IMG/VR virus record: IMGVR_UViG_3300018080_000098
Coordinates: 248,001-312,000 of that record
DNA length: 64,000 nucleotides
Direction: 5' to 3' (one strand)
The notes under the pieces were generated by a model. That model did no database searches and was not told the origin of the DNA. It saw only the letters and a program-made list of their open reading frames with translations. This document shows, piece after piece, positions 11,612 to 40,432 of the stretch; the first letter of the stretch is position 1; every line of letters starts with the position of its first letter. The translations under genes were made by a program, and so were the position numbers.

Positions 11612-12286
11612 ATGCAACCAAGGAAACTCAAGTACCGGAGACGCTTGTACGTATGTGCAGACATCTACGAACGTACGGATGACGTGGTACAATGGATGGT
11701 AGAGAACCGTCATCAGCTGATGGATCCTGACACCTGTGAGTGGAACTACGATAAGGTTGCCGCGGCTGCTCAGAAGCACTTCGCTGATGCTGCCGACGTG
11801 GACTTCCGATTCGCCGCCATCTCTGCGTGGAAGCGCGTAGCAGATGAGCAAGAGATTTGTCTGCGGAAGAAGTTGGAAGAGCAGGGCGGAGACCCGATGG
11901 AGCTCTACCGAGGTTGGCGACGCACCTCCTCGAGGAGTGGGGACATGAAAAGGCTTACCTACAAGGGGCGCACGTATGTTCGTGTAGCTGCGCAGGACGA
12001 CTACAAAGGTACCGCTGAGTTTCTCGTGACCAATCCCAAGGCGTCGTACTCGGTGTACATCGGGCGCGAGTTCAACCCAGCTAACGGTCGCTACGAGCAT
12101 ATCGGCGGTCTGCTAGCGAAATACGATCCGGACAGTAACTCCACGTCTGTTTTCCTAATCGATATCCCTCAAAACTATTTGTCAGATAAGTGGGAACCTG
12201 CTCCGACAGGCGCTCCTCTGGCAACGGTTTCCGGCGATGCCCCCGATGAAGCAGTGAAAAAAGCTGGCTTCGATACCCGCGACTAG
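11612..12286 (+). CDS. hypothetical protein with YKG motif
   Basis: Internal RLTYKGRTYVRVAA; possible internal start at 11945. Confidence 0.55.
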   Translation: MQPRKLKYRRRLYVCADIYERTDDVVQWMVENRHQLMDPDTCEWNYDKVAAAAQKHFADAADVDFRFAAISAWKRVADEQEICLRKKLEEQGGDPMELYRGWRRTSSRSGDMKRLTYKGRTYVRVAAQDDYKGTAEFLVTNPKASYSVYIGREFNPANGRYEHIGGLLAKYDPDSNSTSVFLIDIPQNYLSDKWEPAPTGAPLATVSGDAPDEAVKKAGFDTRD

Positions 12287-12290
12287 CTAC

Positions 12291-13688
12291 ATGCAGAAGC
12301 TTCTGTACAAAGGCCGCGTGTACAAACGCGCGCTATCCAATACAGGGTACGACTCGGTAAGCTACCACTCCGAGCAGGAGATGAAAGGTCTGCGTCCAAG
12401 CCCACTTTACGGTGTCATTTCCATCACCGATCCCGGCAGAACCGCTAACCTGCCCGAGGGGTGGGGGAGCATCCTGCGTCTCCAGTTCGACGATGTTGAA
12501 GAACCAGATCCCTACAAACCCTACGGTGACCCCTATGCCCGGTCCTCTGATCTATTCACTACCCAAGACGCTCAGAAAATCATCCAATGGCTCAACGCTA
12601 ACAAACGTGAGCTCGCGGGTGTCTACGTGCACTGCTGGGGAGGAGTCTCCCGCTCCGCAGCCGTCGCCAAATTCATCGCAGAAAAATATGGCATCCCCTT
12701 CGACCACTCCTACGACAAGTACAACACGCTAGTCTACGACCTGCTTAAACAGGAAGATGGTAACGCAGCGACCTCGCGTACAGCTGCGAGTTATAGTAGC
12801 GATACACTATTTTTGGCTAAGAGTGTACATACTCCGAAGGACTGGTGCTACGACCACATCGGCTTTGTGGATAAAGCTACCGGAAACTTCGTACAGATGA
12901 GTGGACATCGGCATAAGGAAGGCGTATTTTCACTATCCAAGTTGACTGATGAGCCCACTATCCAATCCGACCACTACGATACCATAAAGCTTCCGAAGAC
13001 CGTCACATTTACCAGAAACCCACTAGGAGCAGTTAACTGCGTTACCTTTGTTGTTGCTGTCCTCAACGCGAATGGTATCGATAGATGGGACCGGGAAGAC
13101 TTCCATCGCATCTTCAAGTGCGACAAGTCTACGACTGCTAGCAGTAACAAGACCACAATTCGATATAAAGGTGCCACCTACCGCCGTGCCTACGCCGATG
13201 ATTACCTCTACCACATCACCTACGTTGGTAGCCTCCCCGCCATCGCTGCTCGAGGACTTCACCCGGGTACCGGTGTCACCTTTGGCAAGGGCTACTCCGG
13301 TTACTCCGCAGGAAAACTGTTCCTGTCTGAGTGGGACGGCGTAGGTTTCTGGGTGGACCGCTTGGGAGCTATGGCCGAGAATCGCGCCGACAACCCCGTC
13401 CAAGACGGCCTCATTCCCATCGTTATCCGTGTCCCCGATGGCATCGTGCCCGACGTCGAAGAAGATACTCCTGGCACCCACGATTCCAATGCCGGTGCGT
13501 GGACAACCACCCAACCAATCCCACCTTCCCAACTCGAGGTGTACGACGGCGCCTCGTGGCTTCCCCTCTCCTCCGTCGACCACGAAATGCTTACTGAGGA
13601 AGCCTACGAAGCCGCTGAAAAAGAATTCGAGGACGACGAGGAGCTCGTCTACTTGAACGCTTCTCAGTTCGAACCCACCTTTTCGTAG
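12291..13688 (+). CDS. multidomain effector: PTP/DSP phosphatase, permuted papain-like domain, ADP-ribosyltransferase-like domain
   Basis: VHCWGGVSRS (CX5R); DHIG...NCVTFV; YLYHIT..SLPAIAARGLHP; two YKG motifs. Confidence 0.7.
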   Translation: MQKLLYKGRVYKRALSNTGYDSVSYHSEQEMKGLRPSPLYGVISITDPGRTANLPEGWGSILRLQFDDVEEPDPYKPYGDPYARSSDLFTTQDAQKIIQWLNANKRELAGVYVHCWGGVSRSAAVAKFIAEKYGIPFDHSYDKYNTLVYDLLKQEDGNAATSRTAASYSSDTLFLAKSVHTPKDWCYDHIGFVDKATGNFVQMSGHRHKEGVFSLSKLTDEPTIQSDHYDTIKLPKTVTFTRNPLGAVNCVTFVVAVLNANGIDRWDREDFHRIFKCDKSTTASSNKTTIRYKGATYRRAYADDYLYHITYVGSLPAIAARGLHPGTGVTFGKGYSGYSAGKLFLSEWDGVGFWVDRLGAMAENRADNPVQDGLIPIVIRVPDGIVPDVEEDTPGTHDSNAGAWTTTQPIPPSQLEVYDGASWLPLSSVDHEMLTEEAYEAAEKEFEDDEELVYLNASQFEPTFS

Positions 13689-13824
13689 CCTACAATCCTC
13701 TTGACATCCCAGGTAAGCACGCTATATCATGCGTGTTGGAGGACATTTCCATGCTTCAGAGATTGCGCTTGCTGGCGCAGCAGTTCTTCTCGCTCTGAGC
13801 TGCTGCAAGGGAGAAACATACACC

Positions 13825-14364
13825 ATGACCTACCCCACCAATCTACGCACACTTGTACTAAACCAGGGCTACGAGCCCATCCGGGTAATCAATTGGCAGC
13901 GCGCCGTCACCATGGTCTGGCTCGACAAGGCGTCTGTGCTCAGCGAGTACGACGACGCAGTGCATTCCAAGCACCTAACTTGGAACATCCCAGCTGTTAT
14001 TGGGCTTCGCTACAAAACCAAGCGGTTCGTGCCAGATGTCAAGCTAACCCGGCAGTACGTTTACGCGAGAGATTTGTGGTGTTGCCAATACTGTGGCCAG
14101 AAGTTCCCTGCTTCGAAGCTCACCTTCGACCACGTCGTACCGCGAGCTCGCGGCGGCAGAACTACCTGGACCAACGTGGTCACTTGTTGCACACCGTGCA
14201 ATCAGCAGAAGGGTGACCTTCCGCTCAAAGATTGCGGGCTCACATTGCTACGTAAACCCCGGAAGCCCAGATGGATGCCTGCGCTCCTCGTGAAAAGTTT
14301 CTCCGAGCGTGGTGTCCCAAACCAGTGGCACGATTACATCGGGTGGCTACGTGCTGCTGCCTGA
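13825..14364 (+). CDS. HNH endonuclease
   Basis: RD..CQYCG..LTFDHVVPRARGG.TTW.NVVTCC..CN..KG. Confidence 0.9.
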   Translation: MTYPTNLRTLVLNQGYEPIRVINWQRAVTMVWLDKASVLSEYDDAVHSKHLTWNIPAVIGLRYKTKRFVPDVKLTRQYVYARDLWCCQYCGQKFPASKLTFDHVVPRARGGRTTWTNVVTCCTPCNQQKGDLPLKDCGLTLLRKPRKPRWMPALLVKSFSERGVPNQWHDYIGWLRAAA

Positions 14365-15066: not shown

Positions 15067-15519
15067 ATGCCAAGATTACCCAACATCCTGAAGTACCGGG
15101 GAGCTGTCTATCAACAAGTCTGTGCAGCAGACGAAGACAACTCCCTGGTGCAGCAGCTGGAAGACGAGGTCGACAAGGCTATCGCTGCGCTCGGAGGGCA
15201 TCGGACTGGCCAGAAGGTTGGTGGTCCCGACAAGCTCCGCAACAGCGGTGAGCCTTGGTCGACCGAGGTTGTTGTAAAAGTATCTAAGCTGCAGCCAGAA
15301 ACAGACCTGGCCACTGCTTTCCCCTACAGCACCATCGAGTGGTGTGGCTGGGTGGAGGCCAGCTTGGTGGACGACAAGCTCCAGCTGTCCGCTTCGGGTA
15401 ACCTTGCTCTCGATGGCCTGTGCCACGACGAGCAGGCTCGCATCCTCGGTAGAGAGGATGTGGTAGTCGGTGATTGGGATGGCGAAGGGTGGACGTGGCG
15501 CCGTGATGTCCGCGGCTGA
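15067..15519 (+). CDS. hypothetical protein with N-terminal YKG-type motif
   Basis: PNILKYRGAVYQQV. Confidence 0.6.
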   Translation: MPRLPNILKYRGAVYQQVCAADEDNSLVQQLEDEVDKAIAALGGHRTGQKVGGPDKLRNSGEPWSTEVVVKVSKLQPETDLATAFPYSTIEWCGWVEASLVDDKLQLSASGNLALDGLCHDEQARILGREDVVVGDWDGEGWTWRRDVRG

Positions 15520-21892: not shown

Positions 21893-24175
21893 ATGTCGTC
21901 GACGAAGAAGCCATTCCCGAAACTGAAAAAGCGTTCCCTCACAGACTTTGGAGGGGATGCTAGGGAAGAGGCTTCCGCGAAGAAAAAGAATACACCCAAA
22001 AAGAAAGTTTCTCCCGCGTCAACTCCCACCACGAAACCGAAAGAGTCGTTCAGCACTAACATCTACGCTGCCCTCGATGCAGCCTCCGAAGTCACCGAAG
22101 ATAGCACTAAGGTACCGAGCCCCAACGAGCTCATGAAGCTCGCTATCTCAGCGGACCTCGACCCCTCCATCTTCGTCGAGCGCAGCTTCCCGGTAGCAGC
22201 CAACGTTATAGAGTGGTGTCGGAGTGCCAACTTCCTGGGCTTTTCTGGTGAGCTACGGCCTCGACAGTTCCAGGTCCTCTCGCAATTCTTCGGGGATGTC
22301 TGCTACCAGTGCTCCGATGTCCATTACGTACACAACGTCCCTGTAGATGATACTATCGGAAACGTTATCGATCGATTCGTCCTGCTTGAACATGGTGTTT
22401 GTCCTAAATGCCGACGTAATCGCACAGAGATGTTGGCAGACTGGCTATCAGATCCACGGTTCGCAGATTACAATCAGTTCGATGAAAAGCTTCAACTGCG
22501 TCCTGTACCTCCTAATGAATTTGTTGGTGTGTGGGGGCAGAGGTCTGGAAAATCCTTCACTGTTTCTACTTTTGCTGTCCCTTACATATTGCATCGCTAC
22601 TTAGCGCTCCCAAGCCCCACAAAGTATTTTGAGCAGGCTAGTAATTCTATCTTACAAGCTACGTTTGTGGCGCCTACTATTTACCAGGCGGAAGACAACA
22701 TGTGGAAGTCCTTCCGGGAAATCTATGAAAGTTCGCCATGGTTTAGAGAGATAAAGAGCCATAACATCGCGGAAGGGAAGCGTTTAGGGGTATCTCTTTA
22801 TGAAGCTGCGAAGCGTTTCATCTTTTTCCCCGGAAAGCGCATCGCTATTTATATGCAAGCTGCCAGCTCTATTACGCTGCGTGGTGCAACCAGACTTTGC
22901 TGTACCCTTGATGAGTTAGGTTGGTTTAATACTACATCTGATGGGAAGCGCCGTACAGGGGTCAAAGACGGCACTGAAATATTTAACGCGCTAGAGAACA
23001 GCTTGCAAACTATACGTACCCAAGCAAACAGGCGTCGTAGGAGTGGTGATTATAACACGCTTGATGGTTATATGCTCAACATTTCCAGCCCAACTTCAGT
23101 AGCCGACCCTATTATGCAACGGGCCACGGTAGCGGATAAGAGCCCTCGCATGTTCTACACACACTATGCAACATGGGAGGCTAACCCTCAAGAAGATGAG
23201 GATACTATCAAGGAACAGAAAGCTGGTGACCCTGAATCGCTGATGCGCGACTTCTACGCTATACCGCCCCGAGCACTCAGTCCTTTCTTCCCAAACCACG
23301 CGCTCGTGGAGCAACTCGTAGCAGATGAGACCGTAATCGAACCCCTGTTCAACTACGTTATCGATAAAGAGAGCCATACCGGTGAGCCCTCTCTTCTACG
23401 CCCCACGCCTAAAGATATCAAAGCAGACATCTTCAACGCACGGGTGCTCGCTGTGGATAACGGAGAAATCAACGATCACTTTGCTCTCTGCATCGCCCGC
23501 TATGAGCCAGAAACTGAAGGTATCATTTACGAGGAGTTCCTGGAAGTAGCTCCCTACCGAGGTTTCCATGTAGACCTCAACTGGTGCTACAACGAGCTCA
23601 TCGTTCCGCTCGTTCGCTCCTTCCAGTTCGTGCACGTAGTATTCGATCGCTGGAACAGCGCTGTCCAGGTCCTCGACCTTCGCAACACACACGATATGGA
23701 CGCGGAACGGTACACCCTCAAACTGAAAGACTACAAAGAATTCAAACACGACTTACAGGACGTGAAGATTCATTTCCCCGCAGCAGAGAAGAACCCGGAT
23801 GACCTGCTCAAAATGCGAAACGTAGCCATGCGCGCCGATTACCCCAGAGCGCACTTCCAGCTGCAACTCACTACTGTAGAGCAGTTCGGCAACAAGGCCC
23901 CCATGAAACCAGAGAACGGTACGGATGACCTGTTTCGCACAGCCGTTCTCTGCCACAGCCAAATCCGTCGCTACCAAGACGAGTACGCCAAACGAAGCCG
24001 AGGCCGTGGCCGTCGCCTGCCCGGCATGATGACAGCTGGCCTGTTCCGCGGCGCTAGCACCCGAGGAATGGGTATGACCAACCGCGGCCTCGAGGGTGGT
24101 GGTCCCAATACCGGGCGCTCCGTAGGAATGTTCTACAACAGGTCGAGCCGCAGCCCCTTCAACAGAGGAAGCTAA
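21893..24175 (+). CDS. terL: terminase large subunit
   Basis: Walker A GQRSGKS, Walker B TLDELG, nuclease AVDNG..D, VVFDRWNS, TDDL; upstream of portal. Confidence 0.85.
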   Translation: MSSTKKPFPKLKKRSLTDFGGDAREEASAKKKNTPKKKVSPASTPTTKPKESFSTNIYAALDAASEVTEDSTKVPSPNELMKLAISADLDPSIFVERSFPVAANVIEWCRSANFLGFSGELRPRQFQVLSQFFGDVCYQCSDVHYVHNVPVDDTIGNVIDRFVLLEHGVCPKCRRNRTEMLADWLSDPRFADYNQFDEKLQLRPVPPNEFVGVWGQRSGKSFTVSTFAVPYILHRYLALPSPTKYFEQASNSILQATFVAPTIYQAEDNMWKSFREIYESSPWFREIKSHNIAEGKRLGVSLYEAAKRFIFFPGKRIAIYMQAASSITLRGATRLCCTLDELGWFNTTSDGKRRTGVKDGTEIFNALENSLQTIRTQANRRRRSGDYNTLDGYMLNISSPTSVADPIMQRATVADKSPRMFYTHYATWEANPQEDEDTIKEQKAGDPESLMRDFYAIPPRALSPFFPNHALVEQLVADETVIEPLFNYVIDKESHTGEPSLLRPTPKDIKADIFNARVLAVDNGEINDHFALCIARYEPETEGIIYEEFLEVAPYRGFHVDLNWCYNELIVPLVRSFQFVHVVFDRWNSAVQVLDLRNTHDMDAERYTLKLKDYKEFKHDLQDVKIHFPAAEKNPDDLLKMRNVAMRADYPRAHFQLQLTTVEQFGNKAPMKPENGTDDLFRTAVLCHSQIRRYQDEYAKRSRGRGRRLPGMMTAGLFRGASTRGMGMTNRGLEGGGPNTGRSVGMFYNRSSRSPFNRGS

Positions 24176-24180
24176 ACGTC

Positions 24181-24567
24181 ATGAATATCTACACATTTGT
24201 ACGAGATACCTGCACCAAAGCCAATTTCGGTGTCAACACTGGAGCCGTTCAACGACTCGTCGGAACACTCCGTGCCGCTGGGTTTCAAGATGACCTATCC
24301 ACCAAAGATGCTCAGATAGCTACACAGATTATCAACAAGCGTCTCAAGCAGATAAGCAGCCCCGAGATGCGCACGGCAGGTGTAGAATCACCCATCTCGT
24401 CCACTGCAAAGTTTGAAGAAATCGAATCGCTACGCAGCAAGAACCTCTGCCCACGTTGTAAAAGTACTATGGACGAGGTAAAGCTCGCAACGTACAACAA
24501 AACTAAGGCTGCGTACGAGAAAGCCAAGTTCTGCAAAAGATGTAAAGTAGCTCTCTGGATCGACTAA
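24181..24567 (+). CDS. zinc-finger protein
   Basis: CPRC and CKRC at the C-terminus. Confidence 0.55.
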   Translation: MNIYTFVRDTCTKANFGVNTGAVQRLVGTLRAAGFQDDLSTKDAQIATQIINKRLKQISSPEMRTAGVESPISSTAKFEEIESLRSKNLCPRCKSTMDEVKLATYNKTKAAYEKAKFCKRCKVALWID

Positions 24568-24583
24568 GTAGCGGAAAACAGAC

Positions 24584-26995
24584 ATGTTCAAAGTGAGATT
24601 CGATATGACGGAGGGGCGCTACCGCCGCGTCGCCAACCGCACCGCCGCAGTCATGCGGTCGCACAGCTCCTCCTCAGGTGCCCGCCGCAGGTACGGCACA
24701 GCTACCACAGGAGCTATCCCACCAGATAAGCTCCGCCACGCTGTAGGCTCCCTTACGAATGTCACCGCGCCAATGCAAGCAGGCGCAGACATGTCCCAGC
24801 GATACTCCCCCGTCTTCGAACGCGCCGAGGACCCGACTATCGCTGAAGATTTTATGCCTGCCGACCCCCAAACGCAGCATAAAATATTTCGCAACCTTAT
24901 CATGTTTGACCCCATTGCAGGTCCCGCCACCGAGTACTGGCGCGACCTCGCCTTCTCTCAAAATGTCATCCTTAGTGGCATCGACGACGATAAAGCCATT
25001 CAATTCTTTCAAGACGCCATCGACGCATCCGGTATCGTCCCTGCGATGCCCATGCTCCTCAGCGACTACCTCACGTTCGGTAAGTTCGTCTTCCACATGA
25101 TTTTCGATAAGAAGATGGGTTACTGGACCGAGGTCATCCCACACGACCTCGATTACGTCTCCATCAAGGTTTCCCCCATTCCGAGCCTCGACCCCATCAT
25201 CGACATCCAGCCCACACAAGACATGCGAGAGTGGGCCATCTCTTCCGACCCCCGCGTCATCGCACAACGTCGTGATGTAGACGCCGTACTCGTTAGCCTC
25301 ATGGCAGCCGGACGCCCTATTCCCCTAGCGCCCGAAAACACCATGTTCCTTCCGCGTCGAGTGTTCGCTACCGACTACTACGGTACCTCGTACCTCACGC
25401 GCATTATGCCCTTCAAAATCTATGAGAAGGCTCTCCTCGATGCATCCATCGCTGGAGCTCGTAGACGTGCTGGACCCCTCTGGCACATCAAAGTGTGGCC
25501 CGACGCTACCGATGTTGAGATGTCCGAAATCCTCGACCTCTTCTTCGCCGCAGAAGAAGACCCCATCGGCGGCAAAGTCCTCACCCGAGAAGGCGTCGAT
25601 GTTGTCCCTGTTGGTGGAGGCTCCGCAGACTTCTGGAAACTCTCTGATGAGTGGAACTTCCTCAGCGAAGCTAAGATGCACGCGTTGGGAATCAGCGCTA
25701 CCTTCTTAGACGGAACAGCTAACTACAACAGCATGGACATGATTCTGTCCACCTTCCTCGAGAAGGTCCGGTCTGTCCGTTCTTACTTTACGCGCAAAAT
25801 CATCCTTGAGAAAATCTGCCGACAGCTCGCGCAGATCCATGGCATGAAAAAGCGCTCGCAGGCAGACCTGTCCCACCGCATACGTACTAGCAGGAAAATC
25901 AATAAACGTTCAGACCCAGAGTACATGCTGCCAACTATCGAGTGGGATAAGCCCCTAGCACCCATCGCAGACCGCGACTACCTCGATATCATCAACATGC
26001 TTGATGAAGCTGGGCTTCCTGTACCCATCCGTATGAAAACTCAGGTAGCCGGTTTCGATATCGACAAAGCACTCGACTCTTTCGATTCAGACCTCGAAAC
26101 CTGGAAGAAGATTTACGAACACCGTCGTGCCAAAGCAGAGCTCGCCGCGCAGTACGGGTTCGATGAGAGTGGTGCATTCCAAGGCGGTGAGCTTGGTACA
26201 GGGCTCGGAGGAGCTGGTTTAGGCGCAGAGATTGGTGGTGAGTTGCCAGGAGGAGGCCTCCCCGGGGAGCTTCCCCCCGAAGAGGGTTTGGGTGAGCTCC
26301 CTGAGCTCGGTGGAGGAGAAGCTGCTCCTGAGCTTGGTGGTGAGGAAGCTGCTCCCGCTACTGAAGAACTTCCCCCGGCAGCACCTACTCCTGGTGCTGG
26401 TGAAGGGTTCGGAGCAGATCTGGCAGCCCCGCGCTTCAAGGCTAAGCCCCTTCCTCAACGTCTCGTGGTCAGCAAAGCTCGTATTCAAGCAGCTAACGAT
26501 ATTGTTCAGGACCTCGAGCGAATCCCCATCTGGGATAATGATGGCGCTCTCTTTGGTTTACCTCGTCGACGCGTAGCAAAAATCCTGGACCGCATTGCTC
26601 ATACAGACCCCAAAGAGAAGCGTCGCAAAAAACTCGGTAGAGCTCTCCCCAAAGAGCTCGCGAAAACAGAAGGGCTCGATCGGATGCAGGCCAACATGGT
26701 CCAATACCTCGCTATCCGACTGGGGTTCGTTCCACCCGTAGAAATTCAAGAAGAGGCTTTCGATAGCATCCGCAAGTTCATCGTTTCCCGTATGGACGGT
26801 AACGGCTTGACGAAAGCAGTGAGCAACGAGATTGTGATGCTCACTAAGATAGCTGAAGCTGGCGGACGTCGGTCCGATAGCAAGTTGGCTAAAAAGATAA
26901 ACCCTGCGTTGATTATGCCACGCTACGAAAGCGCCCTTTCCGATTCCCAGCTACTAACGGGCGTCGTCGACTCGAACCCGTTCATCAAATCGTAA
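24584..26995 (+). CDS. portal protein
   Basis: Position after TerL; DYL.FGK, YGTSYL, ALGISATFLDG.ANY motifs; Gly/Glu/Pro-rich insertion. Confidence 0.75.
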   Translation: MFKVRFDMTEGRYRRVANRTAAVMRSHSSSSGARRRYGTATTGAIPPDKLRHAVGSLTNVTAPMQAGADMSQRYSPVFERAEDPTIAEDFMPADPQTQHKIFRNLIMFDPIAGPATEYWRDLAFSQNVILSGIDDDKAIQFFQDAIDASGIVPAMPMLLSDYLTFGKFVFHMIFDKKMGYWTEVIPHDLDYVSIKVSPIPSLDPIIDIQPTQDMREWAISSDPRVIAQRRDVDAVLVSLMAAGRPIPLAPENTMFLPRRVFATDYYGTSYLTRIMPFKIYEKALLDASIAGARRRAGPLWHIKVWPDATDVEMSEILDLFFAAEEDPIGGKVLTREGVDVVPVGGGSADFWKLSDEWNFLSEAKMHALGISATFLDGTANYNSMDMILSTFLEKVRSVRSYFTRKIILEKICRQLAQIHGMKKRSQADLSHRIRTSRKINKRSDPEYMLPTIEWDKPLAPIADRDYLDIINMLDEAGLPVPIRMKTQVAGFDIDKALDSFDSDLETWKKIYEHRRAKAELAAQYGFDESGAFQGGELGTGLGGAGLGAEIGGELPGGGLPGELPPEEGLGELPELGGGEAAPELGGEEAAPATEELPPAAPTPGAGEGFGADLAAPRFKAKPLPQRLVVSKARIQAANDIVQDLERIPIWDNDGALFGLPRRRVAKILDRIAHTDPKEKRRKKLGRALPKELAKTEGLDRMQANMVQYLAIRLGFVPPVEIQEEAFDSIRKFIVSRMDGNGLTKAVSNEIVMLTKIAEAGGRRSDSKLAKKINPALIMPRYESALSDSQLLTGVVDSNPFIKS

Positions 26996-27005
26996 CCATC
27001 GAAAG

Positions 27006-27596
27006 GTGGTAGACATGTCCGACCAAGAAACTCTCTCGAGCGAGGGAGGAATAGGCATCGAGTTCAGTGCGCCCTCTCCTTATGACCTTCCGGAGAAGTT
27101 GCGTGTGGAAGCCCAAGATCCCGAAGAAGAGAAGTCTGAAGAATCCCCTACCGAAGACACACCTGAAGAACCTGCTGAAGAGGCTGCCGATGATCCGTTG
27201 GCTGAAGAGGAGCCAGAAGAGGAGAAGGTAGGCCCATCTGAAGAGGAGATGCTCGAGTCTATCGAGAAAAGTCCTGGTGTTCAGTGGAGAAAATACCTTC
27301 GCCCCGTACTCAAAATCATCAAGGATACGAAGCTCAAAGTTCCCATCGAGCTCCACAATAGCTACACCGTCGGAATGGACGATGACACTTCTTTAGGGTT
27401 CCACATTGTTGGTATAGTTCATTTCATCGATGAGGTTCCAGCGGACGTCGCTGCTCAGCTTAAAGGGGAAACGCTTCGCTATGATGCGTTTGTTACTCCG
27501 GATGGCAACCTCGGAGATGTAGACCTTCTTTACCCTACACTGCAAGCTCCGTACGAACCCACTTTTCGGATAAATCGAAACGTGGAACGCCTTTGA
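27006..27596 (+). CDS. acidic hypothetical protein
   Basis: ORF in the head module. Confidence 0.55.
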   Translation: MVDMSDQETLSSEGGIGIEFSAPSPYDLPEKLRVEAQDPEEEKSEESPTEDTPEEPAEEAADDPLAEEEPEEEKVGPSEEEMLESIEKSPGVQWRKYLRPVLKIIKDTKLKVPIELHNSYTVGMDDDTSLGFHIVGIVHFIDEVPADVAAQLKGETLRYDAFVTPDGNLGDVDLLYPTLQAPYEPTFRINRNVERL

Positions 27597-27645
27597 GGTT
27601 AGTTTATAACGACTAACCGAGGCATAGCGTAAACGGGATACCTGT

Positions 27646-28053
27646 ATGGCGAATTGGAGCAGAGCATGGAACGGCTGCGGCAGCAATGTCAGCAGTAGTT
27701 GTGCTGCTGGTTGCTTTAATCCTTTATACCCTGCTGCAAGTACGCAGGGGAATGTTCTGGATGGGTTTCCTCTTTCCATCCAAACTTGCGGTCAAGCGAT
27801 GCACGAGTTTGGGCAGGCACTCCAGTCTGCTCTTCCTGCTCAGAACGTTATTGTGAAAACAAACTCTTCTGCGTCGTACACGTTGGACGTTCGTATTGAT
27901 CCCAAAGTCACAGCCACTGCCACTATCCAATTTCAAGGAAACACGTGTGACTTTCCTGTTTCTGCTACGTACGCAAAGGGTGGAAGTAGTGGGAGCGCCA
28001 AGTTTTCCGGACTCACCGAGCTACTTAATTGGCTGGTAAGTGTTTTGCGTTAG
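27646..28053 (+). CDS. hypothetical protein
   Basis: ORF in the head module. Confidence 0.55.
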   Translation: MANWSRAWNGCGSNVSSSCAAGCFNPLYPAASTQGNVLDGFPLSIQTCGQAMHEFGQALQSALPAQNVIVKTNSSASYTLDVRIDPKVTATATIQFQGNTCDFPVSATYAKGGSSGSAKFSGLTELLNWLVSVLR

Positions 28054-28059
28054 GTTGGT

Positions 28060-28302
28060 GTGGAAATTATGGGAACGTTTAACAAAAAAGGTCTTCCGGC
28101 GAAGTTAGTCTATAAAGGATCAAGATATCGTCTTGCAATAACAGAAGAGGGCAAGCTCTGGAAGAGCCAGATAGCTCCTCGTCTTGAACAACTTTTCGAG
28201 ATCGCTTCCGACGGTGAAACAGAAGACCAGCTCAAGAAGGAGCAGGCTCATTCTATTTACCGTGAGCTTCGGGAGTACTTCAAGCTACTGGGCATCCAGT
28301 AG
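28060..28302 (+). CDS. small protein with YKG motif
   Basis: PAKLVYKGSRYRLA. Confidence 0.55.
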   Translation: MEIMGTFNKKGLPAKLVYKGSRYRLAITEEGKLWKSQIAPRLEQLFEIASDGETEDQLKKEQAHSIYRELREYFKLLGIQ

Positions 28303-28373
28303 TTTTCTTTATTACCCTGTCAACATTACCAAGTCACCCACGGCAGGTTTGCCAGCAACATCAGGAGAGTTTA

Positions 28374-30074
28374 ATGCCAACCAAGCAAGCGACACGAACG
28401 TATCGGGATTTGAAGGGTCGTACGACCCAGAAGTCTCGGGTGCATCGGTCTGATCGCATCCCAGGAGATCAATTCGATGCCGATAGAGCGCTAGACGAAG
28501 GCTACCTCAACATTGAGGAGGGGGCGGACTTCGATGTAGCGGAAGAGGTAGATCCCTCGGAGGTGGAAATTGTCACTGAACAAATTCCGCCTCGAGCGGA
28601 CGAACCGGAAATGCCTGGAGAAGAGCTGCCCCCACCTGAGGAGGGTTACCAAGAAACAAGTGAAGAGGAGCAAGAGGAAATGCCGTACGAAGAGGGAATG
28701 GAAGTAAAGGAAGAGGACATCGAAGAGGCTTACTACGGGGACGAGAAGCCGAAGGAGCTCTACGAGGAGCCCGAGAAAGAGGTAGAGGAAGCCTGTGGCA
28801 GTCCCATGAAGGAGGATGCTGCGATGTTGAAGCGTTCCGAAGGTAGTTTTGCAGACCGTCTTCGTATGGCGATGGAGCCCGCTGAAGAGGAGCTGGTGGG
28901 TGAGCTCGGTGAGGAAGTGGCTCTCGAGGAGCCGATGCCGACCGAGGGGCCGTGCCCTGCAGGTTGTGAGCCGGTGACAACGGAGGAGACTCCTCCGGAG
29001 GGCGCCGAGGACGAGGGTATTCTCGAGGTGGGTGAGGATGAGGTGACCTTCCTCGAAGAGGAGCCAAAGGAAGCGGCTAGTGAGGAAGTGACCGCTGATT
29101 CCGAAGATGTAACTCCGGAAGAGGTGATCACGGAGCCCATCCCTGAACCTGAAGAGCCGACCGAGGAAGTAACGGCGGATGTCGAGGAAACCTATGCTGC
29201 CGAAGAGGCACTCTACGAGACTCTGGGCAACATCGAAACGTTGGCAGACGTTTCCGCAGAAAACGTAGACCTTTTCCGCACCAACGAGGAGACAGAGAAC
29301 CCTCAGTACGTGGTGATGGTGGATGGTGACCCGGTGGCGAAGGTGGCGTTCGAGGACCAGCCTGAGGGGGTTCTGTCCGAGATGTTCACGGATGACGACT
29401 ACCCGCAGTACGTGTTGGAGAACATGCAATCCTTCGGTGTGAAGGAGACGCTGCAGCACGTGCACGCTCGCTACTATGTAGCCAGCGCCATGTCTGGTGA
29501 GGTTGCTCAGCAGATGCGAACGGCTGCCGTTGAGGACATGCAAGTCGAGCACAAGCAGCGGTTGGCTGAGATGAAAGACCAGCTGATCAACGTGGCCAAC
29601 ATCGTCGTCGAGGGCTCGCTCAAGAACTACATCACCGACAACCCGCTGCGCGACGCGCTGGTTCAGGGTATGCAGACGGTGAACGTAGACGAGAATGCGG
29701 CTCTGGACATCGTTGAGGCAGCGTTCCGGCAGAAGGGCAGCGACTTCTTCCGTGCCATCATCAAGAAGGCCGAGGAGTGGATGGGAGCTCCGCAGGAGGT
29801 GTTGGAGCACCACGTGAAGGAGATCTCCCAGATGGACTACCGTCATCCTGGGTACGTACGGGAGATTCCGGAGGAGATTCCGGAGGAGCAGGTGGTCGCG
29901 CACATCGAGCAGGTTCCTGCCAGCGTACCACTTCGCACGGTAGCTTCGGCCTCTCCGGCGCCGCGTCCACAGGCGCAGGCGGGGCAGTGGGACAAGGAAG
30001 CAATCAAGCGTGAGCTCAACCTGCATCAGAACCTGGTGCAGAAGTCCCTCACGAACCGCGGTGGTCCCCGCTAG
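28374..30074 (+). CDS. acidic scaffold-like head assembly protein
   Basis: Very Glu-rich low-complexity N-terminal half, helical C-terminal half; directly before the protease. Confidence 0.55.
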   Translation: MPTKQATRTYRDLKGRTTQKSRVHRSDRIPGDQFDADRALDEGYLNIEEGADFDVAEEVDPSEVEIVTEQIPPRADEPEMPGEELPPPEEGYQETSEEEQEEMPYEEGMEVKEEDIEEAYYGDEKPKELYEEPEKEVEEACGSPMKEDAAMLKRSEGSFADRLRMAMEPAEEELVGELGEEVALEEPMPTEGPCPAGCEPVTTEETPPEGAEDEGILEVGEDEVTFLEEEPKEAASEEVTADSEDVTPEEVITEPIPEPEEPTEEVTADVEETYAAEEALYETLGNIETLADVSAENVDLFRTNEETENPQYVVMVDGDPVAKVAFEDQPEGVLSEMFTDDDYPQYVLENMQSFGVKETLQHVHARYYVASAMSGEVAQQMRTAAVEDMQVEHKQRLAEMKDQLINVANIVVEGSLKNYITDNPLRDALVQGMQTVNVDENAALDIVEAAFRQKGSDFFRAIIKKAEEWMGAPQEVLEHHVKEISQMDYRHPGYVREIPEEIPEEQVVAHIEQVPASVPLRTVASASPAPRPQAQAGQWDKEAIKRELNLHQNLVQKSLTNRGGPR

Positions 30075-30087
30075 TTCCTGTTAGGAA

Positions 30088-30966
30088 GTGCTTTGCACAC
30101 GGAGGCAGGAGGGAAACTTCCTGTCTCCTTTGGAAGGCATTTTTCATCCTTTCCGTGTGAGCGTGCCCATGTTCTCAAACCCCGACATTGTAGCAGCTGG
30201 TCCCGGTCTTCACGTGGGGGAGCCTTGCCTTTCCCAGCAGTTCACTGGGAAGGGTTTTATCAACGAGCCTGCGATTATCGAGGGGCGCACCCTTGACGTT
30301 CATCAAGCAGGAAAGAGTCTTCGAGTAGCGAGCCACGAGCTCGAGAAGGTGGGGAACTGCGCTTGCGGTTTTCTGGACATTTCGTGGCTTCCCTTCGCTG
30401 CTGAGCAGTACCATCTGAGTCCCAACATCTCCGACTACGTTTTAGTAGACGTCCCCATCGTCGTGGCGGATTTTCCGAACCGGAACATGGATTCGTTTTC
30501 ATACGACCAGCTTACGGATTGGCGCACACCTATTGGTCGAGTAGCTTTTCAGACCTTCATTGGAAAGCCGGTTCACCAGGACCACGACAACATGGATGAC
30601 ACCCGAGCGAAGGGTGTGATATTCGATGCTACGCTGTTGCCCTTCCGTGACCGCTGGCACGTGAAAATACTGAAGGGGTTTGACCGGTCTAAGGATGCAC
30701 GTTTAGCTCGGTTGGTTCAGGAGAAGAACCGTATCGGGCACAGCATGGGTGCGTTGGTGGAGCGTACAGAATGTTCGTTGCCGTGGTGCAAGTTCCACAG
30801 TGATGGGCGTATCACGTGTGATCACATTCGGAACGGTGCTGGCAAAGCGGACGTTATCGACAAGCATCTGGTCTACGAGAACATGATGGACTTCTACTTC
30901 GTGGAGTCGTCCAGTGTGGAAGACCCGGCGTACGTTGTGGCGTTGTCGGACAAGATTTGGGCTTAG
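30088..30966 (+). CDS. prohead protease-like protein
   Basis: PNRNMDSF, TFIGKPVHQDH, GVIFDA, SMGA..CS, E.S.VEDPA; start may be 30169. Confidence 0.7.
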   Translation: MLCTRRQEGNFLSPLEGIFHPFRVSVPMFSNPDIVAAGPGLHVGEPCLSQQFTGKGFINEPAIIEGRTLDVHQAGKSLRVASHELEKVGNCACGFLDISWLPFAAEQYHLSPNISDYVLVDVPIVVADFPNRNMDSFSYDQLTDWRTPIGRVAFQTFIGKPVHQDHDNMDDTRAKGVIFDATLLPFRDRWHVKILKGFDRSKDARLARLVQEKNRIGHSMGALVERTECSLPWCKFHSDGRITCDHIRNGAGKADVIDKHLVYENMMDFYFVESSSVEDPAYVVALSDKIWA

Positions 30967-30980
30967 AAAGGGAGCGATTG

Positions 30981-31799
30981 ATGGGCAACAACAGTCCTCC
31001 GTACGAAGTGGCATACAAGGGTGTACTTTACCGGTTACGTCAAGCGGGTGGCCTTGGTGCTACTGGCGAAAACGATTTTACGATCGTTCGGAAGGAATAC
31101 CCCTCAGACACCCGTGAGCTCCGCTACTCTGGCGGGGCTTTTATTCTTGAGCTCACGCTGAAGTGGGGTTTTGCACCAGGGGCGACCGCGGACTTTTCGG
31201 TCACCCTCCCGGAAGAGGATGCAAAGTTAACATTCGGAGCGATGGTAGCGGATGGCGGTGTGGTGAGTGAGGAGTACAAGCGACTCGTAGAAGGAGGAGA
31301 CGCACCAGGTCCAGTAGCCAAGCTGACGCAGAAAGCCCTTCCAGCACCAGAACAGAAGCAGTTGACAGCTGCAGCATCAATAGGGAAGCGTGTAACGGCC
31401 TTACTACGCTGGCCAGGAGGCGACCCGTTATTGCGTACACCACCCCCGCAAGAAGTCGCAAAGGTAGTCTTCCATCTATGTAATCCATCGGAAGGGTTTC
31501 TACTTGGTGGTGTAGACTACGGTAGGGTGCCCAGTGGTTTAGTGGAGCAGTTTGGCCAGCAGCTTCAGATTGAGCTCATGCAGCGTTTTCCGGGTGCAAC
31601 TATTGACACTCGGGTGGTTTCTCAATCGGACCCTCACTGCGGATATCCTATTGTACTGAACAAGAACAACGTGCCATTGAAGACGTACGGGGAAGGGTTG
31701 GACAAGGTGAGCTACGAGAGGGAGCTCTCTCACATGGCTCTCGACATCTGGCGCGAGTACTACAGAAAGTATCAAGACCAAGCCCGTGGTGGTGAGTAG
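30981..31799 (+). CDS. hypothetical head-associated protein with YKG motif
   Basis: PYEVAYKGVLYRL. Confidence 0.6.
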   Translation: MGNNSPPYEVAYKGVLYRLRQAGGLGATGENDFTIVRKEYPSDTRELRYSGGAFILELTLKWGFAPGATADFSVTLPEEDAKLTFGAMVADGGVVSEEYKRLVEGGDAPGPVAKLTQKALPAPEQKQLTAAASIGKRVTALLRWPGGDPLLRTPPPQEVAKVVFHLCNPSEGFLLGGVDYGRVPSGLVEQFGQQLQIELMQRFPGATIDTRVVSQSDPHCGYPIVLNKNNVPLKTYGEGLDKVSYERELSHMALDIWREYYRKYQDQARGGE

Positions 31800-31808
31800 G
31801 AGCATCTG

Positions 31809-32513
31809 ATGGCGAAGATCAAGATTCAGTCCAAGTACGCAGTGTACAAGATGGTCACAGCCAAGAAGGAAGACCGTCGACCAGGTGCCATTCCTGAGCA
31901 TCTTCGTTCTCGGATGTCCGACTTGCTGGCGAGCTACTTTTCTCAGGTGGGTGAGGAGCTCTACGATAGAGTGATGGCGGAAGTCACCGACAGTGTACAG
32001 AAGACTTTTGCTACGGGCGTGAAAGAGTTAGGGGATCTGGTAAAGACGAAGTTGGGCGAGCTAGGGTTCAAGGAATCGGTGCGTCACGTTCAACCGTGGT
32101 TACAGTCTATTGTAACAGACGTTAGCAATGAGGGTGTTCCAGCGCTTACTTCTTCGTTGAACAACATCGCCAGCCAGTTTTCTGTAGACTACTCGGCTGG
32201 TGGTGATACAGTAAGTGAGGAGGAGGGTGAGGAGCTGCTCGAGGTTGAGGCGCCGAAACCGACGGAGCCTGCAGCAGAAGAAGCTCCTGCTGAAGAGGAT
32301 GCTACGAAAGAGGACCTGACCGCCATTCTGGAAGGGAAGGAGCCCGCTCCCGCTGGTGGAGAAGAGCAACAGGAGGCTGCCGCTTCCACGGTGGGAGACG
32401 TGAAGCGTCGTTTGCGCAAGATGCGGTCGGAGCGTAGAGTGGAAGCTGCTGGAGAAACTCGAGAGGAGCTACTGCGAAAAGCTGCGGTTCACCTCAAGAC
32501 CCTATCGGAGTAA
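31809..32513 (+). CDS. hypothetical protein
   Basis: ORF with AGGAG RBS. Confidence 0.6.
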   Translation: MAKIKIQSKYAVYKMVTAKKEDRRPGAIPEHLRSRMSDLLASYFSQVGEELYDRVMAEVTDSVQKTFATGVKELGDLVKTKLGELGFKESVRHVQPWLQSIVTDVSNEGVPALTSSLNNIASQFSVDYSAGGDTVSEEEGEELLEVEAPKPTEPAAEEAPAEEDATKEDLTAILEGKEPAPAGGEEQQEAAASTVGDVKRRLRKMRSERRVEAAGETREELLRKAAVHLKTLSE

Positions 32514-32516
32514 CTG

Positions 32517-33152
32517 ATGGCTGAACCCGCACGCAGAGGTCCGCCTCCCATTCCGAAAGAAGAGGGCCCTCCTCCTACCCCACAGGAGCGCGCGAAGGCG
32601 CAGCGTACTGTGCTGGAGTTCATGCGTCCTGCATTGGATGAGGTAGCTGAGCTTGCTTTAGCAGCGAAGAAGACGCGGGATGATTTCCACTCTCGTCGGA
32701 ATCGGTTGTTGGAAGTAACAAAGCTTCTCGCTTCCTTCCACAAGAAAAATCCGCGTGAATTTCAAGCTGCGATGGGCTACCTGAAAAAAGGTAACGAAGC
32801 GTGGATGGCGTTGGACGACGCCGTCATGAAAAACGCGACAGAGATTTTTCAGTCGTTCAACAAACTGTACGCGGAGCTCAACACTTTTTTAGAGGACCGT
32901 GCGCCCGCGAAGAAGCTTTCTCCTGAAGAGAGGATGCCCCCTGAGACGCCGCGAAAAACTCTCGAGATGCTGCTTGTGAAAGAAGAGGGCATGGACCCTG
33001 AGCAGGCCAAAGAGACTGTGCGGCATATGAGTGATGAGCAGATAAGCAAGATCATCCCTGCGGGTGAGTTGTTCCCGCCCCGCATCGTCCAGTTCCGTGG
33101 AAAGATGTATCGTCGTGCGTCGGTCGGGACGTTGTTGAAGCGTACGTGGTAA
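32517..33152 (+). CDS. hypothetical protein with C-terminal YKG-type motif
   Basis: PRIVQFRGKMYRRA. Confidence 0.6.
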   Translation: MAEPARRGPPPIPKEEGPPPTPQERAKAQRTVLEFMRPALDEVAELALAAKKTRDDFHSRRNRLLEVTKLLASFHKKNPREFQAAMGYLKKGNEAWMALDDAVMKNATEIFQSFNKLYAELNTFLEDRAPAKKLSPEERMPPETPRKTLEMLLVKEEGMDPEQAKETVRHMSDEQISKIIPAGELFPPRIVQFRGKMYRRASVGTLLKRTW

Positions 33153-33703
33153 CAATGGACCTCGTTTTTTCCAGACCCGATTTCGAGCGTTTACTTCCAG
33201 ACTTGCTACAGCTGTGGCCCGAAAGTGGGGAGTGGCACCCGGATGCTGAAGCACAGGTGCTCAAGCTTTCAGTGGCAAGTCGGCAGCGCCACGAAGCTTC
33301 TGGTGACGAGCTTGATCTCGTTTGCGTGAGCACAACCATCAGTAAAGCTCAGTTGTCGGAGGTGGGAGGTCGCATAGCGGCAGTTCGGTCGGTCCCATGG
33401 AAATATCGTCGTTTCTTTGAGAAGGGTCGACCTTCTTTGCGCGCGGCTCTCAAGCTGCGTCCAGGAATGATGCTGCCTATCACCATCAACCGGGTGGATA
33501 CTACAGCTCGAGTGAACACGGTACGTCGTCTTCGGAAGGGTGGGAAGCCCCACTTTCTGAAAATGGATATCACTTTGGACACCAAGCACCTACCAGTAAT
33601 CCTGGAGCGGGAAACGAAGTGCAACTGTCTCTACTGTGGCACACCGGCAACGAGTGATGAAGTAAACTGTAGGGGGTGCGGTGCGCCGCTGCCCGCGTGC
33701 TGA
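33146..33703 (+). CDS. hypothetical protein with C-terminal zinc ribbon
   Basis: CLYCG..CRGCGAPL. Confidence 0.6.
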   Translation: MVTMDLVFSRPDFERLLPDLLQLWPESGEWHPDAEAQVLKLSVASRQRHEASGDELDLVCVSTTISKAQLSEVGGRIAAVRSVPWKYRRFFEKGRPSLRAALKLRPGMMLPITINRVDTTARVNTVRRLRKGGKPHFLKMDITLDTKHLPVILERETKCNCLYCGTPATSDEVNCRGCGAPLPAC

Positions 33704-33714
33704 CTGAGGTAACA

Positions 33715-34305
33715 ATGAGTCGAAGAAAATCCATTTACAAAGAGCAGCCGAAATCGATTCTCTACATGGGGCAGCACTACGTGTTGGCTGCGGAGGGTGA
33801 TCCGGAACCTTTGGAAGAGGTTCCAGAGGAAGCTCCTGTTGAGGAGGAGCCTCCGAAGAAAAAGCGGTCTTCTGCTGCGCGTGTCCGGATTGATGAGTGC
33901 AAGGGTAACAGTGTCACATTTGAAGTGATGGCACTCGTGCACAGTTACGACGGCAGTGGTATTCCTGGTCTACCGGATGCGGATGGCCAGGTACGGAAGC
34001 GGAGCTACAAGGTCAAGCAGATCTCGAGTTTGAAGGCTATTCCAAAGGATGTGCTTTCGATGATCCAGGCGGATGGGAACGGGGACGCCGTGATGGACCG
34101 CATCGAGAAGCTGCTTCGCGTGCGCCCCTCTCCTCCGCTCTACTTCATCCGCGCTACGGGTGGATGGAACTGGAGCAAGCGTAACGGAGACAAGGGGGTA
34201 GCAGAGATTCAGCGGTTGCTGGAGTACCTACGGGGCCGTCGGGCGATTCTGTTTTCTTACTGCAACAACAAAATCGACTACGGGAGTAACCCTGGTCTGA
34301 TTTAG
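33715..34305 (+). CDS. hypothetical protein with YKG-type motif
   Basis: PKSILYMGQHYVLAA. Confidence 0.6.
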   Translation: MSRRKSIYKEQPKSILYMGQHYVLAAEGDPEPLEEVPEEAPVEEEPPKKKRSSAARVRIDECKGNSVTFEVMALVHSYDGSGIPGLPDADGQVRKRSYKVKQISSLKAIPKDVLSMIQADGNGDAVMDRIEKLLRVRPSPPLYFIRATGGWNWSKRNGDKGVAEIQRLLEYLRGRRAILFSYCNNKIDYGSNPGLI

Positions 34306-34310
34306 TAGCT

Positions 34311-35462: not shown

Positions 35463-35568
35463 TGGACGTTCTACGTTTGCGGAGCGGGAAACTACTTATT
35501 CTATACTGAGAAAACTGAGCAGCAACATTACCCCTTCGCTCAGTATCCCACAAAAATTATTGGAAAGT

Positions 35569-35745
35569 GCAGCGTGACACATCACAACGCGGGCACGAGT
35601 GCTTTGTCAGAGATTCACGAGCAATATTACTCGGTGTGACATTAAACTGAATCTCAGTTGGACGAAGCGGCAGCATTACCCCCGTGATAAGTGTGACGCA
35701 CTCGTGCCCTCTCGGAGAACGGGATGTCACAGTGTGTGACGCTGC
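35569..35745 (+). ncRNA. structured leader or ncRNA upstream of the capsid operon
   Basis: Nested inverted repeats 35569-35581/35733-35745, 35591-35602/35698-35709, 35610-35617/35648-35655. Confidence 0.5.
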
Positions 35746-35787
35746 GAGTTGTAAACAGCGGTAAACGTATTTCATGGAGGATAGAAA

Positions 35788-36573: not shown

Positions 36574-36599
36574 CCCGAAACTGAAGAGAGGAGAAAAAC

Positions 36600-37736: not shown

Positions 37737-37756
37737 TAGCTAGGCATCCACCTGTA

Positions 37757-37790
37757 CCCCCGGGAGGCGGATACCTCCCGGGGGTCTTTT
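37757..37790 (+). terminator. intrinsic terminator
   Basis: CCCCCGGGAGG-CGGATA-CCTCCCGGGGG then TCTTTT. Confidence 0.8.
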
Positions 37791-37860
37791 CACGTCTTGG
37801 GTTGTTCAATCAGTTTCTATCGGGGATTGATTCGACAGTCCAATTCAGGAGCTCCCAGTC

Positions 37861-38988: not shown

Positions 38989-38990
38989 CG

Positions 38991-39968: not shown

Positions 39969-39969
39969 A

Positions 39970-40422: not shown

Positions 40423-40432
40423 GAGTTGACCG

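Follow-up and report, generated by a model that had tools for sequence, protein, structure and literature searches.

The window analysed here is a stretch of 64,000 nucleotides, bases 248001-312000 of the IMG/VR record IMGVR_UViG_3300018080_000098, a phage genome of 349,793 bp with direct terminal repeats. On its plus strand, at 12291..13688, lies an open reading frame (ORF) with an ATG start and no internal stop. Its product, hereafter P0001 (465 aa, 51.9 kDa, pI 5.2), combines three putative enzyme domains, D1, D2 and D3, with two copies of a short recurring motif, the tag, in the layout tag1 - D1 - linker - D2 - linker - tag2 - D3. A preliminary description of this DNA had read the gene as a tagged three-enzyme polyprotein delivered with the virion, and all the motifs on which that reading was based are present within the single ORF, in the expected order and position. 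How the three domains are related to known families, what the tag may do and whether the chain is likely to be packaged, cut or neither are considered below.

The sequence is carried by runs from sediment and seawater metagenomes. Between 11600 and 14400 the locus shows 0 differences and 0 indels relative to a 48-kb Logan contig (run X1, depth 10.9), and over 12.8 kb it is also identical to a second IMG/VR record (sample 3300017991). These identities argue that the fusion is not an assembler slip; X1 is possibly the source sample itself, so that the agreement shows independence of the assembler and not of the sample, and the contig and the second record may stem from one sample or from closely related ones. 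The remaining runs contribute short fragments only, none of which bridges the domain junctions of P0001. A pattern search of IMG/VR with the whole protein recovered the identical record only, tblastn of the whole protein against phage records recovered relatives of D1 only, and a scan of P0001 and eight relatives against NCBIfam gave no match. At the DNA level, similarity to sequenced phages between 11000 and 16000 is limited to the gene for tRNA Leu-TAA (11144-11226), and the major capsid protein (MCP) of the phage is 26-28 % identical to those of jumbo phages (for example BcepSauron, Lu11 and Erwinia phages).

D1 (residues ~20-155; 12348..12755, + strand) is probably an active Cys phosphatase with the fold of dual-specificity and protein tyrosine phosphatases (DSP/PTP), as judged from its sequence and its model. 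It matches phrog_5614 (E 2.4e-25), and the CX5R motif from which a phosphatase had been predicted belongs to an intact P-loop, HCWGGVSRS (residues 114-122; 12630-12656), in which H114-C115-x5-R121-S122 is complete and which is conserved in an alignment with four D1 homologues and a paralogue. The candidate general acid is D68 in RLQFDD (12477-12494), a position embedded in FDD or FHD in all five D1 sequences. The fold matches of the AlphaFold2 (AF2) model include 2r0b (Z 9.8), DUSP28 (Z 9.2) and SSH2 (Z 8.9), with root-mean-square deviations (rmsd) of 3.3-3.5 A over 122-125 aa; among the 50 matches listed 48 are PTP-fold proteins (Z 8-9.8) and the other two are matches to D2. The Pfam DSPc profile gives a weak match over the P-loop region (E 7e-4, 19.9 bits), below its cut-off of 33.5 bits, and ShufPTP and DUSP12 are found among Protein Data Bank (PDB) sequences. 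Standalone homologues occur in 107 phage records (tblastn), some of them annotated as dual-specificity phosphatase. D1 has the fold, the HCX5R(S) loop and an upstream Asp, a candidate for the general acid, in common with PTP/DSP phosphatases (phrog_5614; the viral enzymes SBFV3 7ncy, Orf virus OH1 5ncr and vaccinia VH1 2q05) but differs from known DSPs in its sub-threshold DSPc score, in a disordered, Pro/Tyr-rich insert of 16 residues (71-86) and in being fused to two other enzymes. Vaccinia VH1 is an example of a DSP that is packaged in the virion. The phage also encodes a standalone, tag-less D1 paralogue of 184 aa (genome 188150-188533; L002:1453-2007), which is 44 % identical to D1 and has the HCX5R loop; it therefore holds one tagged and one untagged phosphatase copy.

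For D2 (residues 168-279; 12792..13127, + strand), the assignment as a circularly permuted NlpC/P60 domain of the YiiX/Peptidase_C92, LRAT-like kind is supported by model and sequence, at the level of fold and motifs and not as membership of a named family; it would be a Cys-His hydrolase or acyltransferase. This agrees with the permuted papain-like domain previously suspected from an H...NC pattern. The motifs are DHIGF (residues 188-192), QMSGHRH (202-208) and NCVTFV (249-254). Among the closest relatives D188-H189-x-G-F, Q202-M-S-G205 and N249-C250 (within N-C-x-x-F-V) are invariant, and H206 (in S-G-H) is missing from a single one of them. The permutation is apparent from the order of these residues, H189 and H206 preceding N249-C250, with the Cys at the start of a model helix (250-260). 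The AF2 model of D2 is confident (predicted local distance difference test, pLDDT, 90-98) and matches the two solved Peptidase_C92 proteins, YiiX 2if6 (Z 6.6, rmsd 3.1 A, 100 aa) and 3kw0 (Z 6.3), values that are middling and come from a search in which the model also held D1. An ESM Atlas model of the D2 residues gives template modelling (TM) scores of 0.69 with Peptidase_C92 and 0.58 with LRAT, and feature matches to CLN5, C92 and LRAT/IcsB_M. At the sequence level D2 has no match in Pfam (including PF05708 and PF04970) at E<=1 and none in PHROG, and its profile finds chance-level matches only among PDB sequences. The His ahead of Asn-Cys and the fold are common to D2, to YiiX/YaeF (2if6, 3kw0) and to the 'H-box ... 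NC' proteins LRAT and H-rev107; unlike these, D2 is not recognized by the PF05708 or PF04970 profile and forms a separate small family. An exhaustive search added six further matches and a profile word search 14 proteins; ~20 members of the family are known, mostly on metagenomic, phage-like contigs. Permuted NlpC/P60 enzymes of the YiiX/LRAT type are amidases, acyltransferases or phospholipases; they are not known to act as site-specific or processing endoproteases.

D3 (residues 301-465; 13191..13685, + strand) represents a large, unnamed and mostly viral family, with 667 representative clusters at E<=1e-3 in an exhaustive search, mostly standalone proteins of 160-190 aa. It starts with LYHITY (residues 306-311), followed by AIAARGLHPG. 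In a 60-member alignment Y307-H308-x-T310 on strand 1, F344 on strand 2, D367, D392, G395, D398 and W423 are near-invariant, D392 even fully so, and a helix carries the motif I...GL. An ADP-ribosyltransferase (ART)-like domain had been predicted here, and the fold matches of the AF2 model (pLDDT 92.4; predicted TM score, pTM, 0.85) bear this out: almost all of the 50 listed are ART-fold proteins, including DarT1 8baq (Z 7.6), KptA 9ld3 (Z 7.1), CC0527/DUF952 (Z 7.0), mouse Tpt1 (6.8), pertussis S1 (6.6) and Arr (6.0), and the best 14 Foldseek rows are all Tpt1. Independently, the family profile finds Tpt1 chains in the PDB (E 0.0065) over the strand-1/helix-1 motif, which aligns to LYHGT of Tpt1, and its language-model features in the Atlas resemble those of a viral DarT/PARP cluster (0.94) and of Arr (0.93; 28/30 matches). 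No Pfam ART family is matched at threshold (DUF7002 comes at E 0.077), and some of the 60 members weakly match DUF7002 and between 1 and 7 of them PTS_2-RNA, Tox-ART-HYE1 or PARP. Each of the Z values is middling by the search tool's own caution; because the fold list is uniform and is joined by independent sequence and feature evidence, the predicted ART fold, nearest to DarT, Tpt1/KptA and Arr, can be regarded as secure.

D3 is not a Tpt1, since only the NAD lobe aligns (residues 92-180 of the 9ld3 chain), and the N-terminal RNA-binding lobe and the Arg-His-Arg-Arg tetrad of Tpt1 are absent. It shares the ART core with DarT, which acts on DNA, Tpt1/KptA (RNA 2'-phosphate), Arr (rifampin) and DUF952/CC0527, and its strand-1 [LY]YHxT and helix-1 motif aligns to Tpt1. 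It differs from these small ARTs by the missing RNA lobe, by Asp in place of an invariant Glu, by a family-specific C-terminal beta/alpha extension and by an acidic tail. Because DarT, Tpt1 and Arr modify DNA, RNA or a small molecule, protein modification is not the default expectation for D3.

The two tags of P0001 are predicted beta-hairpins. Tag 1, LLYKGRVYKRA (residues 4-14; 12300..12332, + strand), has its strands at residues 3-6 and 9-12 with pLDDT 62-67 (AF2 model m88065c851433). Tag 2, TIRYKGATYRRA (residues 289-300; 13155..13190, + strand), lies directly ahead of D3, where the model of that domain shows strands E3-6/E9-12 at pLDDT 75-83, and the D3 gene of the relative L003, which stands alone, opens with the same tag. 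Throughout the 349.8-kb genome, open frames of at least 100 codons contain the strict pattern [YF][KR]GxxY 30 times, against only a few expected by our estimate from residue frequencies, and 24 of the 30 share additional flanking consensus. With a looser pattern, P-x-x-[ILV]-x-[YVF]-x-G-x-x-Y-x-[LR]-[AV], behind which Ala and acidic residues are common, 60 raw matches are obtained in the called proteins, compared with 13 in reversed and ~16 (maximum 22) in shuffled sequences. About 44 copies in ~33 proteins are credible instances of a motif of ~16 residues with the consensus P-x-x-I-x-Y-K-G-x-x-Y-x-R/L-A/V, of which 25 are N-terminal, 15 internal and 4 C-terminal. Third codon positions within the tag are essentially free (0.09 bit at the invariant Gly codon), so that selection acts on the peptide and not on the DNA; a DNA-level repeat (promoter, recombination site, mini-element) was ruled out on the same ground.

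The recurring tag noticed in the preliminary description is linked to the phage head more strongly than could be seen at that stage. A head module (21893..46526, + strand) begins ~8 kb downstream of P0001, on the same strand and in an unbroken plus-strand block. It comprises, all on the + strand, the large terminase TerL (21893-24175), the portal (24584-26995), the head maturation protease (30088-30966) and the MCP (36600-37736), which were identified by PHROG matches (phrog_17415, E 2e-93; phrog_16240, E 3e-87; phrog_2522, E 1e-40; phrog_18299, E 7e-51), as well as a virion protein gene directly ahead of that for the MCP (35788-36573). Interleaved with these genes are at least 15 tag-bearing ORFan proteins, charged and largely helical, and 20 of the 44 tags fall in the module, in proteins encoded between portal, protease and MCP or just after the MCP. 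This is the part of the head genes in which T4-like and giant phages encode their scaffold, core and internal proteins.

The tags of the module fall between 28060 and 46526 (genome 276-295 kb). Several head-module proteins carry two to four tags, among them the products of 37861-38988 (three), 38991-39968 (four) and 40800-42620 (three). The second of these combines an N-terminal DUF5661 (E 1.9e-13) and its four hairpins with a long Lys/Gly/Asp-rich low-complexity stretch and could be a DNA-contacting internal head protein. The module also encodes a tag-less protein of 566 aa that is extremely rich in Glu and Pro (28374-30074). Outside the module, tags are found at genome positions 174-181 kb, 214-222 kb, 5-9 kb and 345-349 kb. 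The first of these regions is a second cluster, made of small helical tagged proteins on both strands; just upstream of it, at genome 171946-172569, is a gene for a protein of 207 aa with four AT-hook-like repeats (K-K-R-G-R-P-K-G-S-K-N-K). Tail sheath (PF04984) and gp25 (PF04965) were looked for genome-wide in order to locate this second cluster with respect to tail genes, and neither was matched.

Relatives of P0001 show that its modules are shuffled. L003 (67-80 % DNA identity), where synteny runs through the downstream HNH gene and beyond, lacks D2 and encodes tag-D1 (159 aa) and tag-D3 (179 aa, 76 % identical) in two genes of which the stop and the start overlap by 4 nt. In P0004, tag-D2 stands alone as a protein of 127 aa. 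L008 encodes X-tag-D1, a stop, and then D2-tag-D3, and P0006 has the order tag-X-tag-D2-D1. Other arrangements are Y-tag-D3 (P0005), D2-tag-other (P0152), tag-D2-(ParB-like)-tag-Y (P0011) and tag-Z-tag-(GNAT-like)-D3 (P0010, P0012). D1 and D3 are adjacent or fused in L003, L008 and P0001; of the four related loci recovered with DNA, three link the two domains. Domains of the D3 family also occur within proteins of 1.9-2.1 thousand amino acids, together with ART-PolyVal, PBECR5, SprT-like, ParB_N, NUDIX and GNAT domains. As for the other modules, X (L008:1-726; P0006 residues ~20-310) contains FHGT ... SGIFVAP and, from its sequence, looks like another PARP-type H-Y-E ART; Y contains HEFIH and is a candidate zincin, and ParB-like G-N-H-R segments are found in other relatives. 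A count of peptidase-like domains (D2 or the HEFIH module Y) in the fused relatives was not used as evidence, because most of these relatives were found via the D2 search.

The same comparison accounts for the first linker. Linker 1 (residues 156-167, with SRTAAS at 162-167; 12756..12791, + strand) is flexible, pLDDT falling below 50 at residues 161-163, and linker 2 (residues 280-288, STTASSNKT, with STTASS at 280-285; 13128..13154, + strand) is disordered, with pLDDT below 50 at residues 280-290. P0004 and P0006 hold a full tag at the position of linker 1, ending in R-x-A-A ahead of a shared YSSD, which identifies linker 1 as the C-terminal remnant of a lost tag. In P0006 the sequence ...RQAL stands ahead of D1, where P0001 has the full tag 1. 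In domains made internal by fusion the hairpin is thus gone and its tail kept, and each separately translated polypeptide of the lineage that was examined has kept at least one full tag. The tag therefore resembles an address label, one per polypeptide, and not a structural part of each domain.

Two known systems are instructive. Polyvalent proteins are polypeptides of conjugative elements and phages that carry several unrelated effector domains, shuffled among relatives, include ART-type and peptidase-like domains and are associated with packaging and head genes (Iyer et al. 2017; PMC5512222); the same is seen in P0001. The class is predicted to be packaged in the virion and injected, and often includes a peptidase proposed to process the protein (PMC5512222). 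P0001 is small by comparison, with three domains in 465 aa, and a text search of that work found none of the three among the domains it describes (PMC5512222). Nor does that work describe a motif such as the lineage-specific hairpin that punctuates the domains of P0001 and is also present on head-module proteins (PMC5512222). The second system is that of T4 Alt and the internal proteins, which bear an N-terminal capsid-targeting sequence (CTS) (PMC5512222; PMC10052503). Alt and IPI-III provide a precedent for a packaged ART and for a short N-terminal peptide that brings unrelated proteins into the prohead, to be injected with the DNA. Alt is an R-S-E ART, whereas D3 has a strand-1 His and, as its nearest relatives, DarT, Tpt1 and Arr. 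The hairpin has no sequence similarity to the T4 CTS, is also found at internal and C-terminal positions and in several copies per protein, and is not followed by a protease site in P0001. Because it joins three enzyme folds in one chain, because its architectures are shuffled among relatives and because D3 occurs in giant polyvalent proteins, the most fitting description of P0001 is that of a small polyvalent protein derived from an in-frame fusion of three neighbouring cargo genes, rather than as a polyprotein. Its domain set and its putative address motif have not been described before.

By analogy with these systems, P0001 would be a packaged single-chain polyvalent effector, a reading to which we give a probability of roughly one half. 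The hairpin would dock its bearer on a component of the assembling prohead, either the interior of the shell or the core. The docked protein would become enclosed in the capsid and be ejected with the DNA, and would, as soon as infection begins, act on host targets linked to phosphorylation and to NAD/ADP-ribose, in take-over of the host or in counter-defence. Loading into the capsid is proposed because the tag is common to head-module proteins and because the gene lies ~8 kb upstream of TerL, and it is supported by the presence of D3-family domains in a protein class predicted to be packaged (PMC5512222). The ORF, the three folds, the catalytic motifs of D1 and D2, the existence and distribution of the tag and the shuffling of the modules are shown by the present data. 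We infer the docking, the ejection, the substrates and any processing; the loading is deduced from the tag distribution and the gene position. As to the targets, counter-defence linked to NAD/ADP-ribose or nucleic-acid chemistry is no less likely than the modification of host proteins, given the substrates of the relatives of D3, the linkage of D1 and D3, and the NADAR, Acb5, PARG, ARPP (“ARG and Rhodanese-Phosphatase-superfamily-associated”), NYN, Ro60 and RlaP genes nearby in the window or in relatives.

A number of observations weigh against a packaged effector. The phage is uncultured, and neither an RNA run nor proteome data were found for the locus. More than half of the tags (24/44) lie outside the head module, and some of their bearers could be non-structural. 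Pfam and PHROG searches with ten tag-bearing proteins revealed no scaffold or internal-protein family, the only match being DUF5661 in one of them. A predicted complex of the MCP with a tagged protein of 80 aa (28060-28299) scored 0.02, which speaks neither for nor against binding. In relatives the modules are found near NADAR, Acb5, PARG, NYN and Ro60/RlaP genes, a neighbourhood that would suit cytoplasmic counter-defence genes too. D1, D2 and D3 all stay below the Pfam thresholds, and their family membership consequently rests on fold and motifs. Lastly, the alignment of 60 members shows no invariant Glu at the usual strand-5 position of D3; D392 is invariant, and D367 and D398 are nearly so. 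The activity of D3 is accordingly less secure than its fold and uncertain on sequence grounds: the domain could be a binder or could use Asp. The ART-PolyVal domain of polyvalent proteins uses H-Y-D (PMC5512222), and a conserved Asp of D3 could, by analogy, serve in the same way.

Part of this evidence can be turned into the alternative that P0001 is a cytoplasmic counter-defence or take-over protein that is never packaged, and that the hairpin docks or oligomerises on some other hub, such as a phage compartment, DNA, a chaperone or a host factor, which head proteins use as well. The gene company just mentioned in relatives would be natural for such a protein, as would the position of the locus in the window, which follows ARPP-1/2, VWA and tRNA genes. 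The tags outside the head module also speak for it, and an aromatic and basic hairpin would also suit nucleic-acid binding. However, the strongest single concentration of tags is found between portal, protease and MCP, the P0001 gene belongs to a plus-strand block that runs into terminase and portal, and D3-family domains occur in classical polyvalent proteins predicted to be packaged (PMC5512222). We consider a purely cytoplasmic role rather unlikely.

A further alternative concerns the chemistry and applies whether P0001 is packaged or cytoplasmic. D1 and D3, with D2 as an optional addition, may form one pathway that acts on an NAD-derived or ADP-ribosylated nucleic acid or small molecule instead of on host proteins; repair of RNA or DNA ends or bases, reversal of host ADP-ribosylation and destruction of an immune signal would be examples. 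The adjacency or fusion of D1 and D3 in L003, L008 and P0001 is compatible with this idea, and the nearest ARTs have DNA (DarT), RNA (Tpt1/KptA) and rifampin (Arr) as substrates. ARPP, NADAR and PARG genes are found nearby in the window or in relatives, and PTP-fold enzymes include RNA 5'-phosphatases, two of which (1yn9, 4mbb) are among the fold matches of D1. On the other hand, D3 aligns with the NAD lobe of Tpt1 alone and is devoid of its RNA-binding lobe and tetrad context, and the linkage of D1 with D3 could simply reflect a shared status as cargo. We consider a common pathway, like the purely cytoplasmic role, rather unlikely.

Still less probable is a true polyprotein, as envisaged in the preliminary description, in which D2 or the prohead protease would cut the two Ala/Ser/Thr-rich linkers and free three enzymes, whether in the head or in the host. 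In its favour, the model predicts disorder in both linkers, the modules exist as separate proteins in relatives, and a head maturation protease is encoded nearby. Genome-wide, [AGS]xE follows 11 of the 44 tags, compared with 8.6 % of background 9-mers, AXE being the site used by the prohead protease of the giant phage SPN3US (PMC10052503), and a peptidase is often proposed to process polyvalent proteins (PMC5512222). In P0001, however, no AXE-type or [LI]xE site follows either tag and no AXE-type site is present in the linkers. A lost tag accounts for linker 1, the enzymes to which D2 is related are, as noted above, not known to be of the processing kind, and the fusion itself suggests that the uncut chain is useful. 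Cleavage at Ala-rich linkers was in this sense not borne out. Finally, that three adjacent genes were joined by sequencing or assembly errors at the junctions is highly improbable: relatives do have separate genes at the same locus, but the Logan contig and the second IMG/VR record are identical and indel-free, other in-frame fusions of the same modules exist in other relatives, and the junctions of P0001 consist of in-frame linkers and lack a start/stop overlap such as that of L003.

The genes that surround P0001 include further tag bearers. The upstream neighbour (11612..12286, + strand; 224 aa) has a degenerate N-terminal tag and a full internal tag and belongs to no known family. Downstream follow an HNH endonuclease gene (13729..14364, + strand; Pfam HNH_5, E 7e-18), which is syntenic in L003 and L008, and a gene for a protein of 150 aa (15067..15519, + strand) with an N-terminal tag that is kept in the L003 orthologue. 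A scan of 10800-15200 for promoters and terminators gave counts at chance level; one sigma-70-like promoter match (11/12; 13701-13730) lies right after the P0001 stop and ahead of the HNH gene, in a region where the number of such matches is that expected by chance.

Further upstream, the gene pair at 2995-6163 encodes an ARPP-1/ARPP-2 protein of 342 aa (E 2e-33) and a protein of 709 aa that weakly matches VWA (CoxE-like). The pair is kept in L003, with genes of the Acb5 and NADAR families separating it from those of D1 and D3. Four tRNA genes precede the locus: Ser-TGA (1540-1615), Cys-GCA (2792-2864), Leu-TAG (6255-6339) and the Leu-TAA gene already mentioned. An ORF at 9890-10281 starts like an HD-domain hydrolase of the SpoT/RelA type but makes better sense in a different frame further on. 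ORF 10087-10281, which overlaps it, resembles the C-terminal end of an L003 protein, and the site may be a frameshift or a gene fusion boundary. Among the relatives, L009 (13225-15837) and L010 (8804-11874) encode a protein of 870 aa that contains the shoulder domain of major vault protein, and a Ro60/TROVE-vWA protein that adjoins RlaP, vault-like and RNA-quality-control genes that are unusual for phages.

Within the packaged-effector reading of P0001, a more general and more tentative view can be formulated, to which we attach less than even confidence. The hairpin would be a portable, position-independent capsid-loading signal that defines an internal or cargo proteome of ~33 proteins, enzymes would become injected effectors by gaining one copy, P0001 would be a natural modular cargo, and D3 would stand for a large phage ART family that acts on a substrate other than protein. 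Should the hairpin address proteins to the capsid, it would provide a list, readable from the sequence, of what a giant uncultured phage injects, and also a short natural tag with which large capsids might be loaded with foreign proteins. P0001 would then illustrate how phages build injected “toolkits” by shuffling tagged modules. It also brings to light three uncharacterised phage enzyme families that are open to simple assays: a DSP-like phosphatase, a permuted NlpC/P60 enzyme and an ART-fold family. The conserved pairing of a phosphatase with a DarT/Tpt1/Arr-like ART in the vicinity of NADAR, PARG and ARPP points to a still unknown NAD/ADP-ribose chemistry in the conflict between phages and their hosts.

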